Of a DNA stretch of 64,000 nucleotides, positions 2,721 through 8,188 are shown in pieces. This stretch comes from Schizochytrium sp. TIO01. Its lineage: Eukaryota; Protista; Bigyra: Labyrinthulomycetes. The stretch is taken from NCBI GenBank assembly GCA_004764695.1, contig SMSO01000033.1, positions 2,480,001 to 2,544,000 on the forward strand, written 5' to 3'. A program made the position numbers and the translations under genes. The notes beneath the pieces are model-generated. The model was not told the DNA's origin, did no database searches, and saw nothing but the letters and a program-made list of their open reading frames with translations. Each line of letters starts with the position of its first letter. The first letter of the stretch is position 1.

Positions 2721-5700
2721 TCATATTTGTGCATTTTTAATGTCATCAAGAGCGCGTCGAATGGCTTTGCCCAAGGAGTCAATCTCAGGACGTCGGCCTC
2801 CATTCGTCATGGTGCTATACCGAGAGGTTCCGCTCAACAGGGCAAGAAAAACACCGGTCCAGTTTGTTGTACCTTCCATCTCCTTTTCAAGTATAACTGG
2901 GATCATGCGAGCAGGAGTTATCTTATGTATCATATAATTATACTCCATTTTACAGAAGTCTTGCGGCGCATCAGGACCAGAGTTCACTTTATCCATGTAC
3001 TCCCGATTAACAAAAACGATGCCCAGAGTGGAGTCGTCGATACCCTGTGTCATTGCCCACATAATGTCTCCACGTTTTATCTCGTTCTGATCAAGCCAAC
3101 AAGATATCTTATATTTTTCTTCCAATCTAGAAGCCACCTTGCATACAAGCTGATGTACAGAACGGTCCTTGCCCCATGCATGCGATAAGAAAACGTCAAA
3201 TTTTTTCTTGTGGGGCGATGCTAACCTGGAACGAAACGCGCGAGCCTCTCCTTGGTTTGGGAAGATTGCTGAGAAAGATGCTACCTTTAACAGCTGGCGT
3301 CCTTCAGATAAGCACCTGCCGTTTCGAGCGTTAGCAAAGGCCTTGATTGAGACACAACATTGGTTATTTGTAGTACCATCGCAGCTTAAAAACAGAGCTG
3401 GTTTCAAATTTTGGTGCATAAAAGCTTCGTCAAGAAACTGGAGTTGTTTATGAAGCAGTTCCACGCAACTTTGTATCGTTCCCCTGATCGGAGTGGCATC
3501 TTCAGCAGTATCCTCGTCGTCCTCTAAGAAGCGGAAGGTGATTCGACGTTCATGTTCATGCGCGAGAAGAAGTACGCATATGCCGTCCATTATAATACTT
3601 GCTGCGTTTGAATAAATTGTTTTCTCTTTTACCTGTACAAGACCCTCAGGAAGTTTCGAAACCATACTCGCAAGAAAACGTTGAAAGACTCCTCTAGGAA
3701 AATGCTCAAACGTAATATATACCAGAGCTGCGTTATCAAACTCCAGCAAGAGTGCGTTCAGATCAGGTCCCGGTATTGCTTTCAACAATCTCGGGACTAG
3801 TAAGGCACCTTCTTCGTCCAAGTCCCCGACCCAGGGACTTTGGCAAGCGAGAAGCATCGCCACCATGAGAGTCGAAAAGTACTCTAAGAAATCCTCGCCC
3901 CAGACGATTCTCAAGAAAGATTGAGACACAACGCTACGAGTTTCCCAAGTTTTCAGACCACTAAACCAATCCGTAGAAACACCAAGCTCAGTAATCGTGT
4001 CTTCCAAAATATTGGCATGCGCCTCCATGTGTCTTGGGTCACAAATTACACGAGACAAATTATTCAACAGCCATTGGGGCTTTAGGACCACATATTTTTC
4101 CAAGATTTTGGTGGATTTGAGATGTACCAGGACACCTAGATCATGCATAAATTCCAGCATACGTGGCACATCCTTTTTTGAAATTCCACAAGATTCTGTT
4201 GCAATTTTATTAACTGCGTCAAGCTCCATATATTCAACATCCTTGTTTGAGAACATACGCTTTAAACAGAGAGACCACCGTAACGAGACCTTCTCCTTTA
4301 CATAAGACTTGGATGCAGCGGCTCTCATGAGAAAGGTCTGGAGGCGCTTGCAACGCGTTTTGTTTTCTCGTTCAGTATTGTCCAGTGGGAAAAACCACAA
4401 CTTCTCTTCTGAATTTCGTAGAAGGTTTAGATCTTTTTGGTGGGACATGTGCTCCCGCAACTCGTTATCGACAAGTTTTAGGTCCTCCTTAGGATCCCGT
4501 AAAGCGTCGAGGTATGTCCCAACAAGAACAACATCCACCTTTTCTTTTGCATGCAAGCGTACTGATTCTAGCCAAAATTGGATCGTGTTCAGCGCCTCAT
4601 TCGTGTCTCCCATTGATTCATAATCAGGAGAGTCCTGAAACTGATGTTTTCCAATCAGTTCTCGCATGTCGAAAACGATGACATAGACACCATACTTTGT
4701 CAAAAACAGGTGATGCAAAGCGTAGAAAACTTCCTGCCCGCCGTAATCCCATACAGTGAAGCTGATATCCTCTTCTACTTGCAGTCGTCCTCTCTCTTCT
4801 AATTTTAGCTTCATGTTAGCCCTGTAGGGTGTCGCAACCTCGTCCGGCTCGATCCAGAGCGTTGGTTTGTCACTCCTGCGAGGTGCTAACAGCGTGGCCA
4901 GTGACTTTTTAGGACTCATGTTTAGCCTTGTCGCAACCTCATCCGACTCGATCCCGAGCTTTGGCTTGTCACTCCTTCGAGGCGCTAACAGCGTGGCCAG
5001 TGACTTTTTAGGACGTCTTGGAATACTCATTCTCCCTCCCAGTAGTTGCTGTTTCGCAAGATCCTCGCAGAGATCAGAGGCCTGGTAGCCTATTCGCTCT
5101 TCTTTCCAGTCCTTCGTCCGTATCAGCTTTAGGTCCACACCAATGGTCGACTCATGTTCCGATACAAATGCTTGACTGAGCAAAGTCCGAATGGTCGAGG
5201 TTTTGCCAGCACCTGCTTTTCCAAGTACCATAAGCTTCGCTTTGCCCCATTGTACCTTTTTATCTTTCGAGAGTGCATTCATCGCAGATGTCGAAAACTC
5301 CTGACGTGCCTTAAAATCTTTATGATATCTAAGGCGGTGACCGATGCGATTGTGGACGTCCTTAGGGATGTTAGAATCAAGTCTACCATAGTACCATGTG
5401 TTTGCTTGGTCAGTTTCAGTGATCTCGCAACTTCTCCTATTGTTATTTTGGCTTCTTTATATGATAAATTGATTGAAGGTGACAAGGATGTCGACACTGC
5501 CAAAATTGAAGCGATGCTTAAAAAATATAAAATACTAAACGTCTCCTCCGCTTGGAAATCAAAGGACAGAACACAAAACTTACTGTATTTTTTGAAGAAC
5601 CTGGTTTTCGTCCATGGCGTCTGCTAACATTTTGACGCCCTCTGAACCGATTCTGTTGAGGCCCAGTCTGTTGATCAGGTTGTATGATGGAAAATAATTC

Positions 5701-8188
5701 AAAACCCATTATTAAAGTCAGTAATCTATTTTGCCTTTTCTCTCATTTGCCACAGTCCATTGACCGAGATTGAAATCCAAAATAGAAACACCGTCGCAAA
5801 TAGACCTCCCCTATACAATCCTACTCGGTAAGCTAGGTAGCTGGTCAGCCTCAACACAGAAGTTTGCGAGCTCAGGAAACTTACGCAAGAATGGTGAGGG
5901 ACCACCCATTTTTCAGCGCTGTAGCCAGTGCCTTGCCGCCTTCGTCACCGATATCATTGGAAGCCAGGCTGTACATTTGATCAAGCGATTTTAAATAGCG
6001 CATATATGCCCATGAAGTTAGACACGTCAGCCATCTCGGTTGAATTTCTTCTCTTGAAGATTTCGTTGTTGCTCTTTCTTTACTCATGAACGAATGAACA
6101 AGCTCGTGAAGATTCATGTAACATACGGCACACTAAATCATTCAAGATTGCCGAACAAATGAGATACCACACAACACCAATGGTAAAGCATGAACGTCCG
6201 ACACTCAAGATAACTTACGTAAGTCGTATCAATGAGCGATGCTGGCACAACGCTTTAGCCAGTTCCTTAACTCCTTCGTCACCAATATTATTTTCATCCA
6301 AGCTGTTCATTTAATCCAGCAATTTGAAATAGTAAATATTTGCGCATGCCGCTAGCTACGTCAGTCATCTAGATGTAATTTTGTCGCTTGCAGATTTCGC
6401 TCTTGTTGTTATTCTCGACTCATCAACGAACCAACAAGATTGTTAAGATTGAAGCACGGCACGGCACTCTGTATCATCAGCAATTGCCAAGCAAATGAGA
6501 TACCACACACCACCAATAGTAAAGCGTGAATATCCAACAGCCAAAAAACACTTACTCAAGAAGTGTCAGCGGGTGGTGCTGACCCAGCGCTGTAGCCAGT
6601 GCCTTAACGCCTTCGTTACCAATATTGTTATTGTCCAAGCTGTTCATTTTGTCAAGCAATTCAAAAACGTGCATATGTGTGCATGAAGCTAGATACGTCA
6701 GTCGTCTTGGATGAATCTCATCTCTTGCACATTTCGTACTGATGTTGGTGTTCTCGATTCATCGACGAATCAACAAGATCGTTAAGCTTAAAGCACGACA
6801 TGGCACTCTGTATCATTAGCAATTGCCAAGCGAATGAGATACCACACACCACCAATAGTAAAGCGTGAATATCCAACAGCTAAGGCAACTTACCCAAGTT
6901 CTGTCAGCGAGTGGTGCTGCCCCAATGCGGTAGCCAGTGCCTTGGCGCCCTCCTCACCAATATTGTTATTGCTCAAGCTGTTCATTTTGTCAAGCAATTC
7001 AAAATAGTGCATGTATGTGCATGAAGCGAGATACGTCAGTCGTCTTGGATGAATTTCATCTCTTGCACATTTCGTACTGATGTTGTTGTTCTCGACTCAT
7101 CGACGAATCAACAAGATCATTAAGATTGAAGCACGACACGGCACTCTGTCTCCATAGCAATTGCCAAGCAAACGAGATACCACGCACCACCAATAGTAAA
7201 GCGTGAATATCCAACAGCCAAAAAAAACTTACTAAAGTTCTGTCAGCGAGTGGTGCTGACCCAGCGCTGTAGCCAGTGCCTCAACGCCTTCGTTACCAAT
7301 ATTGTTATGGTTCAAGCTGTTCATTTTGTCAAGCAATTCAAAATAGTGCATGTATGTGCATGAAGCTACATACGTCAGTCGTCTTGGATGAATTTCATCT
7401 CTTGCACATTTCGTACTGATGTTGTTGTTCACGACTCATCGACAAATCAACAAGATCGTTAACATTGAAGCACGACATGGCACTCTGTATCATTAGCAAT
7501 TGGCAAGAAAACAAGATACCACACATCACCAATAGTAAAGCGTGAATATCCAACAGCCAAGACAACTTACTAAAGTCCTGTCAGCGAGTGGTGCTGACCC
7601 AACGCTGTAGCCAGTGCCTTGGCGCCTTTGTTACCAATGTTGTTATCGGCCAAGCTGTTCATTTTGTGAAGCAATTCAAAATAGTGCATGTATGTGCATG
7701 AAGCTACATACGTCAGTCGTCTTGGATGAATTTCATCTCTTGCACATTTCGCACTGATGTTGTTTTTCTCGACTCATCGACGAATCAACAAGATCGTTAA
7801 GATTGAAGCTCGGCACGTCACTCTGTATCATTAGCAATTGCCAAGCAAATGAGATACCACACACCACCAATAGTAAAGCGTGAATATCCAACAGCTAAGA
7901 CAACTTACTAAAGTTCTGTCAGCGAGTGGTGCTGACCCAACGCTGTAGCCAGTGCCTCAACGCCTTCGTTACCAATATTGTTATTGTTCAAGCTGTTCAT
8001 TTGAGGAAACATTGATAAATAGTTTTTCCGCGCAAAAATCTTGATACCGTCAGTTAACTGGGTTAACTTTCATCGCTTATATGTAGCAGTAATTTACATG
8101 GATACAGCCTCATCCAAACGTACGTAATCACTGTGCCATCCTCATAAAGGCTTTCAAGCGCCTGTATAATTTCTGGGCGATCAGACAT
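2721..8188 (-). CDS. LRR-ROC-COR-TIR (Roco family) protein, about 1132 aa, 10 exons: 8188-8124, 7992-7909, 7654-7571, 7316-7233, 6977-6894, 6639-6556, 6302-6219, 5968-5885, 5667-5584, 5382-2721
   Basis: The terminal exon encodes ROC GTPase motifs (GKAGAGKT, STIGV, WDYGGQ, VGTYLD), a COR domain (LEFMHDLGVLVHL, VVLKPQWL, FPRGVFQRF) and a TIR domain (FDVFLSHAWG, CWLDQ, FCKME). Eight 84-nt exons with CAG acceptors and GTAAGT donors each encode one RI-type LRR (LxxNxIGxxGxxxLAxAL). All introns are phase 2, and the spliced CDS (65+8x84+2662=3399 nt) is in frame without stops. The start exon and the terminal acceptor at 5382 are my manual predictions. Confidence 0.85.
4830..5014 (-). repeat. 99-bp (33-aa) tandem duplication inside the ROC domain
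   Basis: PKKSLATLLAPRRSDKPxLxIExDEVAT occurs twice; gtcgcaacctc is at 4831 and 4930. Confidence 0.9.
5885..7995 (-). repeat. Tandem array of ~338-bp units (84-nt LRR exon + ~254-nt intron), 7 exons / 6 periods
   Basis: Exon 3' ends at 7909, 7571, 7233, 6894, 6556, 6219 and 5885 give periods of 338, 338, 339, 338, 337 and 334 bp. Manual alignment of the introns at 7655-7908 and 7317-7570 shows about 16 differences in 254 nt. Confidence 0.95.

Follow-up and report, generated by a model that had tools for sequence, protein, structure and literature searches.

Plants, animals and bacteria are known to possess intracellular immune sensors in which a repeat sensor is combined with a nucleotide switch and a TIR domain, and to our knowledge very little has been learned about such sensors in free-living protists. 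The closest described system is the leucine-rich repeat (LRR)-ROCO family of the brown algae Ectocarpus and Saccharina, the members of which are candidate immune receptors that undergo exon shuffling and alternative splicing and contain no TIR domain (Zambounis et al. 2012; Teng et al. 2024; PMC3341825, PMC11378527). Here, we describe a gene on the minus strand of a 64,000-nucleotide (nt) stretch of the genome of Schizochytrium sp. TIO01 (assembly GCA_004764695.1, contig SMSO01000033.1, forward-strand positions 2,480,001 to 2,544,000), which we refer to as the window. Judging from its sequence and from comparison with known systems, this gene is probably an intact thraustochytrid LRR-Roc-COR-TIR gene and a candidate immune or non-self sensor that diversifies by means of exon cassettes.

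A first-pass annotation of the window, made from the nucleotide sequence, had likened the gene to the one-LRR-per-exon LRR-Roco genes of Ectocarpus, and this parallel held up in comparison with the published descriptions (PMC3341825, PMC11378527). In both systems, an N-terminal LRR array precedes a Roc-COR unit in a stramenopile host, each LRR is encoded by one exon, and all introns are in phase 2, so that the reading frame is preserved when an exon is gained, lost or skipped. In both, the family is expanded and clustered, orphan LRR exons are located outside of genes, and there are signs of diversifying or positive selection at residues of the concave LRR face, the location of which is inferred from the repeat motif in our case. 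However, the exons examined here are 84 nt long and encode 28 amino acids of the ribonuclease inhibitor (RI) type (LRR_6), as compared to 72 nt and 24 amino acids in brown algae, and the intron splits the central x of the LxL sequence in the β-strand, whereas the brown-algal exon holds the whole LxxLxLxxN motif. Moreover, the gene has a C-terminal TIR domain, which the brown-algal proteins lack, and the host is a unicellular heterotroph in which the neighboring genes are mostly free of introns. As read from the sequences, the repeat type and exon size, the intron position, the TIR output and the host are thus what is new relative to the brown-algal LRR-ROCO genes. No brown-algal protein was present among the matches in our protein searches, which leaves the case for a common origin of the exon arrangement unproven and makes convergence plausible.

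The closest named proteins were P0002, P0003, P0004 and P0007 from another genus, represented by Hondaea fermentalgiana, which contain LRR_6, Roc, COR and TIR_2 domains. They show the same domain order as the window protein, 38% to 43% sequence identity over the Roc-COR-TIR region, and an invariant GAKALADALAKNSSLQTL framework with variable x residues, and they carry misleading automatic names such as "LRRK2" and "NOD2". A search of the papers available to us revealed none describing a thraustochytrid LRR-Roc-COR-TIR family. The first-pass annotation had been cautious about novelty, and aptly so, since this domain combination was already annotated in Hondaea and ROCO-TIR fusions are on record elsewhere. 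It was also noted that the Hondaea proteins P0053, P0055, P0061, P0005 and P0056 combine their Roc-COR(-TIR) segments with WD40 propellers, a protein kinase or SAM domains. The pattern suggests that ROCO-TIR proteins form a larger superfamily in which the sensor domains are interchangeable, mirroring the swapping of sensors among nucleotide-binding LRR (NLR) proteins.

The exons of the window gene were identified with a script that scanned the minus strand for 84-nt segments between AG and GT, and by direct reading of positions 8600-2400. The gene model, the junction codons and the Pfam matches were checked one exon at a time, and structure prediction was performed for the terminal exon alone. 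The resulting plan consists of 10 exons: a 65-nt start exon, eight 84-nt exons and a 2,662-nt terminal exon. They are listed below with the expectation values (E) of the LRR_6 matches.

8124-8188, minus strand: start exon, 65 nt, ATG at 8188, 21 codons plus 2 nt, donor GTACGT, phase 2
7909-7992, minus strand: LRR exon 1, 84 nt, phase 2-2, E 0.002
7571-7654, minus strand: LRR exon 2, 84 nt, phase 2-2, E 0.0024
7233-7316, minus strand: LRR exon 3, 84 nt, phase 2-2, E 0.00034
6894-6977, minus strand: LRR exon 4, 84 nt, phase 2-2, E 0.0048
6556-6639, minus strand: LRR exon 5, 84 nt, phase 2-2, E 0.0025
6219-6302, minus strand: LRR exon 6, 84 nt, phase 2-2, E 0.0051
5885-5968, minus strand: LRR exon 7, 84 nt, phase 2-2, more divergent, E 8e-5
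5584-5667, minus strand: LRR exon 8, 84 nt, phase 2-2, conserved last-repeat type (..DENQVLQKI) common to the paralogues, E 0.021
2721-5382, minus strand: terminal exon, 886 codons plus stop, encoding a linker helix, Roc, COR and TIR

Each LRR exon is preceded by an acceptor ending in ACAG, followed by the donor GTAAG, and open in a single phase (1 nt, 27 codons and 2 nt), while the terminal exon begins at 5382 behind an AG and is open until the stop codon at 2721. The nine junction codons are, in order, ACC, TAC, TAC, TAC, GGC, GAC, ACC, GCA and CAA, none of which is a stop codon. The spliced frame is a single open reading frame (ORF) of 3,399 nt, a length divisible by 3, with 1,132 codons plus stop. 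The window gene thus appears to be intact, with a predicted spliced structure. The eight exact phase 2-2 exons of the first-pass annotation were recovered both by reading of the strand and by the script, and their splicing onto one ROC-COR-TIR exon was recovered as a model with an open frame through all nine junctions. Retention of the intron after any of the eight LRR exons places an NNG codon immediately before TAA (TAG TAA after exons 1-3). With GTAAGT donors in phase 2, intron retention thus leads to an immediate stop, and the long frame exists only when spliced. Tandem Repeats Finder identified a 338-nt unit repeated 6.2 times at 5917-8002, showing that the periodicity of the array reflects tandem duplication of exon plus intron units rather than chance.

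That the organism splices exons of this kind is shown by a paralogous gene, L017, which was verified with a transcript. The transcriptome peptide P0012 (MMETSP0961, labeled Aurant(iochytrium)) mapped to C30:6625009-6628389 on the minus strand with 98% identity, which marks the genome as that of Aurantiochytrium or a very close relative. A taxid in the name line of P0012 that resolves to a fungus was disregarded as a truncated or garbled entry. On the genome, the peptide begins in a 65-nt start exon, passes through an 81-nt exon and then through successive 84-nt exons that each give 27 whole codons and a 28-residue period, and continues in a terminal exon from residue 303. The split codons in P0012 are those predicted from AG/GT splicing, such as CA joined to T for His49 and AT joined to T for Ile77. 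In this one paralogue, the organism does therefore splice one-LRR phase-2 exons and use a start exon of the MS.. type.

The domains of the predicted protein agree with the LRR, Roc-COR and TIR architecture initially proposed, which was borne out by the Pfam matches per exon, the structural model and Foldseek. LRR_6 was the sole Pfam match to the translation of each LRR exon (E 8e-5 to 0.02), covering profile positions 10-24 of 24, and it is the exon before it that ends with the codons for the first nine positions of each repeat. The test pattern for RI-type LRRs, LxxLxLxxNxIGxxGaxxLaxaLxxnxx with 28 to 29 amino acids, was visible in the exon translations, which follow the 28-residue scheme L-T-E-L-[split codon]-L-x-x-N-x-I-G-x-E-G-a-x-A-L-A-x-A-L... 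The terminal exon matched Roc (E 9e-17, 61.8 bits), COR-A (E 2e-12, 47.9 bits) and TIR_2 (E 1e-11, 45.5 bits), all above the curated cut-offs of 27, 35.3 and 28 bits, respectively, and the exon-by-exon profile search thus matched all four families, with the LRR_6 scores of single exons below the cut-off. The features of the terminal exon, with residues counted from its start, are as follows.

4446-5258, minus strand: Roc GTPase domain, residues about 42-312
4830-5014, minus strand: 99-nt (33-amino-acid) in-frame tandem duplication in the Roc insert, PKKSLATLLAPRRSDKP..., Tandem Repeats Finder period 99, 1.9 copies
3273-4361, minus strand: COR domain, with Pfam COR-A at residues 378-462 and a fold that extends to about residue 703
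2724-3203, minus strand: TIR domain, residues 727-886, with FLSH and FCKME motifs

The Roc motifs are intact, with G1 (GKAGAGKT) at residue 54, G3 (DYGGQ) at 212 and G4 (TYLD), which has the LRRK-like T-x-x-D form (T[HY]xD type), at 289. The residues G54, G59, K60, T61, D212, G215, Q216, T289 and D292 were invariant across 24 homologues. With intact GTP-binding motifs and a Roc domain directly followed by COR, the protein belongs to the ROCO family. The AlphaFold2 model of the terminal exon, built with 24 homologues, had a mean predicted local distance difference test (pLDDT) score of 76 and a predicted template modeling score of 0.67, and the Roc insert at residues 117-171 was disordered (pLDDT about 30). 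Foldseek matched the model to LRRK1, LRRK2, the LRR-Roc-COR protein of C. tepidum (6hlu) and Roco2 of M. barkeri (4wnr) with E values of 3e-15 to 7e-11, and the modeled C-terminal part resembled the TIR domains of SARM1, flax L7 and RPP1. A sequence search of the PDB with the terminal exon also yielded Roco and LRRK2 matches, and PADLOC called the TIR as ThsB-like. Glu813 of the FCKME sequence occupies the motif position of the catalytic glutamate in WCxxE and is conserved in at least 90% of the family, making it a putative catalytic residue. Neither Pfam nor Foldseek identified an NB-ARC or NACHT domain in the terminal exon, in which the switch is Roc-COR. No signal peptide or membrane helix was found in the gene, the highest 19-residue hydropathy being 1.74 within the COR fold, and the protein is therefore predicted to be cytosolic. 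In summary, the predicted product is a cytosolic protein of about 1,132 amino acids with a short N-terminal cap, about 8 to 9 RI-type LRRs, Roc, COR and a C-terminal TIR domain.

To place the gene in a wider context, we searched its own genome (64 Mb in 37 contigs), in which the window corresponds to C32:2,480,001-2,544,000. The search sized the family at 26 ROCO genes, with COR-A matches at 26 places and TIR_2 matches at 42 places, and a TIR was located just downstream of most of the ROCO genes. Sixteen paralogues, most of which are intact ORFs of about 850 to 870 amino acids and some of which are broken by stop codons, matched the Roc-COR-TIR region of the window gene with 54% to 56% identity, whereas they were 71% to 85% identical to each other. 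The window gene therefore represents a separate, deep lineage; it is present in a single copy and has its own cassette type. We examined the exon structure in the 9.9 kb upstream of all 16 paralogues. Fifteen of them share the same plan, with a homologous 65-nt start exon, 84-nt LRR exons and a terminal exon, and the numbers of LRR exons were 2, 3, 6, 6, 7, 8, 9, 10, 13, 13, 14, 15, 16, 17 and at least 18. The paralogous start exon (65 nt, MSDHP..ALEQL..GATTL plus 2 nt, followed by GTAAG) was found in 13 paralogues and in L017, and in L028 it is located beyond the 9.9 kb that were read. Five 84-nt exons were identified in the sixteenth, the more distant L027 on C3 (40% identity), with no start exon found in the 9.9 kb upstream. 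For about half of the paralogues, the distance to a contig end is no more than about 110 kb.

The repeat exons of the main family in this genome were used to study how the cassettes diversify, with an entropy profile of 126 exons and pairwise differences (p-distances) for 606 within-array pairs, and exons 1-5 were used for the window array. The framework of the main-family exons (..EGAKAVAAALKENRSLTSL) was almost invariant. Entropies of 1.2 to 1.9 bits were observed at exon codons 2, 3, 5 and 8 and at bases 1 and 2 of the split codon, with the exception of the second position of codon 5 (0.71 bits). Elsewhere, the entropy was 0 to 0.6 bits in the framework codons, 0.47 in the upstream intron and 1.0 in the downstream intron. 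The p-distances at positions 1 and 2 of the hypervariable codons were 0.565 in the main family and 0.34 in the window, as compared to 0.093 and 0.11, respectively, at framework third positions. For the flanking intron they were 0.11 to 0.17 in the main family; no value is given for the window, where indels break the ungapped comparison. The hypervariable codons thus differ 3 to 6 times more than third codon positions or introns. In the window array, gapped whole introns were 91% to 94% identical, as compared to 81% to 98% for the exons.

In the LxxLxLxxN motif, the hypervariable codons correspond to the x after the second L, which is the split codon, the two x residues before N and the x after N. 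The x residues of this strand face the concave, ligand-binding side in known LRR structures. The excess of non-synonymous over silent and intronic change points, at the sequence level, to diversifying selection, or targeted mutation, in arrays that have recently been duplicated and homogenized. Seven of the window LRR exons start with C as the base that completes the split codon, LRR exon 8 and the terminal exon start with A, and in the main family this first base is T almost throughout (entropy 0.16). Because this base is constant, the residue at the junction is determined by the upstream exon alone, which rules out "junctional combinatorics" at the split codon as a source of variation. An exon ending in TA would create a TAA codon if it were spliced directly ahead of either LRR exon 8 or the terminal exon.

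The units themselves are also gained and lost. Since all units contain 84 nt in phase 2, gain or loss of a whole exon plus intron never breaks the frame. The window exon type had five matches genome-wide, all of which were in the window array, indicating that the array grew by local tandem duplication rather than by import from other genes. Among the paralogues, L023 is nearly identical to L022 (96% to 98%) and differs by a 253-nt insertion, and it has one LRR exon more than L022. In L030 (G000:C7:39427-49327), which is nearly identical to both, one acceptor AG has been lost and the exon should be skipped in frame. The modular, evolving recognition surface of the first-pass annotation finds support in this turnover of units, in exon numbers that range from 2 to at least 18, and in the hypervariability of the codons predicted to lie on the binding strand.

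Differences at the locus itself were sought in Logan contigs of other strains, which show the presence of a variant and not its frequency. A contig from run X18 joins position 6292 to 7313 with six bases replaced, so that exactly three 338-nt units are skipped in register inside an exon. The 99-nt Roc duplication is in single copy in contigs from X18, X6 and X17 (joint 4866 to 4966), and P0001, the orthologous protein in another strain, is without the corresponding 33 amino acids. The contigs of three strains exit the array in register, with loose ends at 6834 and 7507, into foreign sequence that is absent from both the window and the whole genome and represents strain-specific content within the array or ahead of it. 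Furthermore, the identity between P0001 and the window protein is 99.2% in Roc and 97.6% in COR and only 70.6% in TIR. The nucleotide divergence is about 14% at 2914-3163, and two TIR haplotypes are present in run X2 (records 12 and 13). The locus is not structurally fixed among strains. An array that was identical across strains had been named beforehand as evidence against a variable receptor; the comparison instead revealed differences in unit number, Roc insert and TIR haplotype.

Such polymorphism would also be expected if the gene were an allorecognition or mating-compatibility sensor, with the same architecture and trigger logic and with polymorphic proteins of other conspecific strains as ligands. 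A hypervariable repeat surface and polymorphic unit numbers match the signatures of fungal HET/NLR-like incompatibility genes, as do haplotypes that appear to be old, two of which coexist for TIR in X2, and subtelomeric paralogues. Our literature search found no thraustochytrid system for allorecognition or fusion incompatibility, which is weak negative evidence, and overall we regard this alternative as unlikely.

The window gene is surrounded by housekeeping genes at a distance of about 420 kb from the end of its contig, and the neighbors that were spot-checked, encoding RGS, PGI, BING4/WD40, two Mpv17/PMP22 proteins and an ABC transporter, were found as single long ORFs. The initial reading of all other genes in the window as uninterrupted ORFs thus stands for these six genes, to which the spot check was confined. 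The two adjacent Mpv17/PMP22-family genes (41581-42648 and 44514-45494, minus strand) appear to be a tandem pair.

With such neighbors, the gene might itself be a ROCO gene with a housekeeping or developmental role in the cytoskeleton, chemotaxis or stress, like Dictyostelium Roco proteins or LRRK2, in which the LRRs bind conserved partners and the TIR domain is a scaffold. Roc-COR is best known from non-immune signaling, the structural matches are to LRRK1 and LRRK2, and brown-algal ROCO genes also respond to abiotic stress (PMC11378527). However, a conserved partner leaves unexplained why the binding-strand codons change 3 to 6 times faster than silent sites and introns, and a housekeeping role does not account for the range of repeat numbers, the enrichment near contig ends or the structural polymorphism among strains. 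We therefore hold this explanation to be decidedly unlikely.

Traces of additional LRR exons were observed about 1.1 to 1.7 kb upstream of the start exon.

9279-9362, minus strand: orphan 84-nt LRR exon of the main-family type, intact AG/GTAAGT, open
9570-9626 and 9849-9902, minus strand: two decayed LRR exons of the main-family type

We considered whether these exons could form an alternative 5' end and rejected this possibility, since the exon at 9362-9279 ends in TA and would give TAG when joined to the single site upstream of the ATG that follows an AG, and both of the other exons have decayed. None of the three can be joined to the start exon in frame, and they probably are remnants of an earlier array. 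A Pfam search with the ORFs from 8.2 to 12.3 kb yielded no meaningful match.

Several observations weigh against the view that the window gene is a functional sensor. The search of sequencing runs revealed no RNA run that holds the gene, and no transcript-derived peptide of it was identified when either the whole terminal exon or the first 274 amino acids of that exon served as the query in protein searches. Run X18, which had been guessed to be RNA, holds the unspliced last intron (5383-5583) and intergenic DNA, and is therefore probably DNA that provides no evidence of splicing. For the TIR-bearing main family, the protein database contained no protein with at least 60% identity. The LRR_6 scores of the single exons fall short of the 23.4-bit gathering cut-off, as expected when an exon covers 15 of the 24 profile positions. 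The HMMER alignment to Cat1 places Glu813 with a gap shift, and its assignment is by motif and conservation. The C-terminal third of the TIR domain strays from the family consensus, with Ser at the almost invariant Pro853, which could mean relaxed constraint. Finally, hypervariability on a homogenized background can also be produced by gene conversion and selection unrelated to pathogens.

The missing transcripts, the relic exons upstream, the off-consensus TIR terminus and the broken state of some paralogues would all suit a silent or decaying copy that still looks intact, such as an unexpressed reserve cassette gene. Yet each of the ten exons has an open frame and canonical splice sites, the near identity of Roc and COR to those of P0001 fits purifying selection, and all core motifs of the GTPase and the TIR domain are kept. 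A silent copy is thus, in our assessment, highly doubtful, and we continue to favor an intact sensor gene.

If so, the mechanism suggested by its domains and by known Roco proteins, NLRs and TIR enzymes would be the following. The LRR solenoid would act as the sensor of a ligand, the binding of which would change the nucleotide and dimer state of Roc-COR. This change would release or cluster the TIR domains, which in turn would cleave NAD+ or signal and thereby elicit a defense, cell-death or non-self response. As the arrays show, the LRR region evolves by tandem gain and loss of exon plus intron units, combined with strong diversification at codons 2, 3, 5 and 8 and at the split codon, with little change in the repeat framework and the introns.

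Each part of this putative mechanism has counterparts in known proteins. Like the plant TIR-NLRs RPP1 and flax L6/L7, and like SARM1, the window protein combines sensor repeats, a nucleotide switch, a matching TIR fold and a putative glutamate of the WCxxE type, and it shares with the plant TIR-NLRs a hypervariable LRR surface and families of variable copy number. In contrast to these, the switch is a Roc GTPase with COR rather than a STAND ATPase of the NB-ARC or NACHT type, and the order of the domains is reversed, with a C-terminal TIR domain. The protein is not part of the NLR family. The LRR-Roc-COR core is shared with prokaryotic and animal Roco proteins, and those of C. tepidum (6hlu), M. 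barkeri (Roco2, 4wnr) and LRRK1/LRRK2 were the best matches in both structure and sequence. Unlike these, the window protein lacks a kinase and has a TIR domain as its output, its LRRs are encoded in an array of exons, and its Roc domain includes a long disordered insert. ROCO-TIR fusions have been recorded in Chondrus crispus (TPR-ROCO-TIR) and Trichoplax adhaerens; compared by description, they have other sensor domains or none reported, and no exon-cassette LRR array is reported (PMC11378527; PMC4104024).

Cassettes of the main-family type may also occur in numbers away from the receptor genes. A first search for the main-family exon gave 1,080 candidates genome-wide, and each of the 40 scored candidates reached at least 94% identity. 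Many candidates are located 15 to 30 kb from contig ends and away from COR or TIR matches, for example at C19:21-24 kb, C23:24-28 kb, C6:2.58 Mb, C34:2.84 and 2.93 Mb, and C24:5.83 Mb, and the arrays on C6, C19, C23, C24, C31 and C34 are not beside COR or TIR matches. The exon plus intron units of the main family measure 385 to 415 nt and more. The telomere-to-telomere genome paper on A. limacinum describes subtelomeric "LORE-TEARS" with units of 366 to 529 bp and no database similarity, interprets them as spacers with a role in chromosome maintenance, and makes no mention of LRR, Roc or TIR. The main-family arrays fit LORE-TEARS in unit size and position near contig ends, a likeness by description and not by sequence. 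A speculative extension, to which we assign a small probability, is that the LRR cassettes generate a repertoire, with regulated exon skipping or mitotic or ectopic recombination yielding clonally different receptors in a single-celled eukaryote, in which case part of the LORE-TEARS would be coding or donor cassettes for immune-type receptors.

Taken at this strength, the locus suggests that a stramenopile heterotroph may possess a sensor in which a Roc-COR GTPase replaces the STAND ATPase, a TIR domain provides the output, and the LRRs are encoded by exon cassettes that are neutral to the frame and diversify at the predicted binding residues. Some of the long subtelomeric repeats of the genus may likewise be protein-coding arrays. 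The organism is known to carry mirusvirus-like elements (bioRxiv 10.1101/2023.06.15.545109). The idea of exon-shuffling ROCO receptors in brown algae would thereby be extended to a unicellular organism that can be cultured and transformed, and in such a host, with its mirusvirus-like elements, receptor function, TIR chemistry and cassette dynamics are directly testable.

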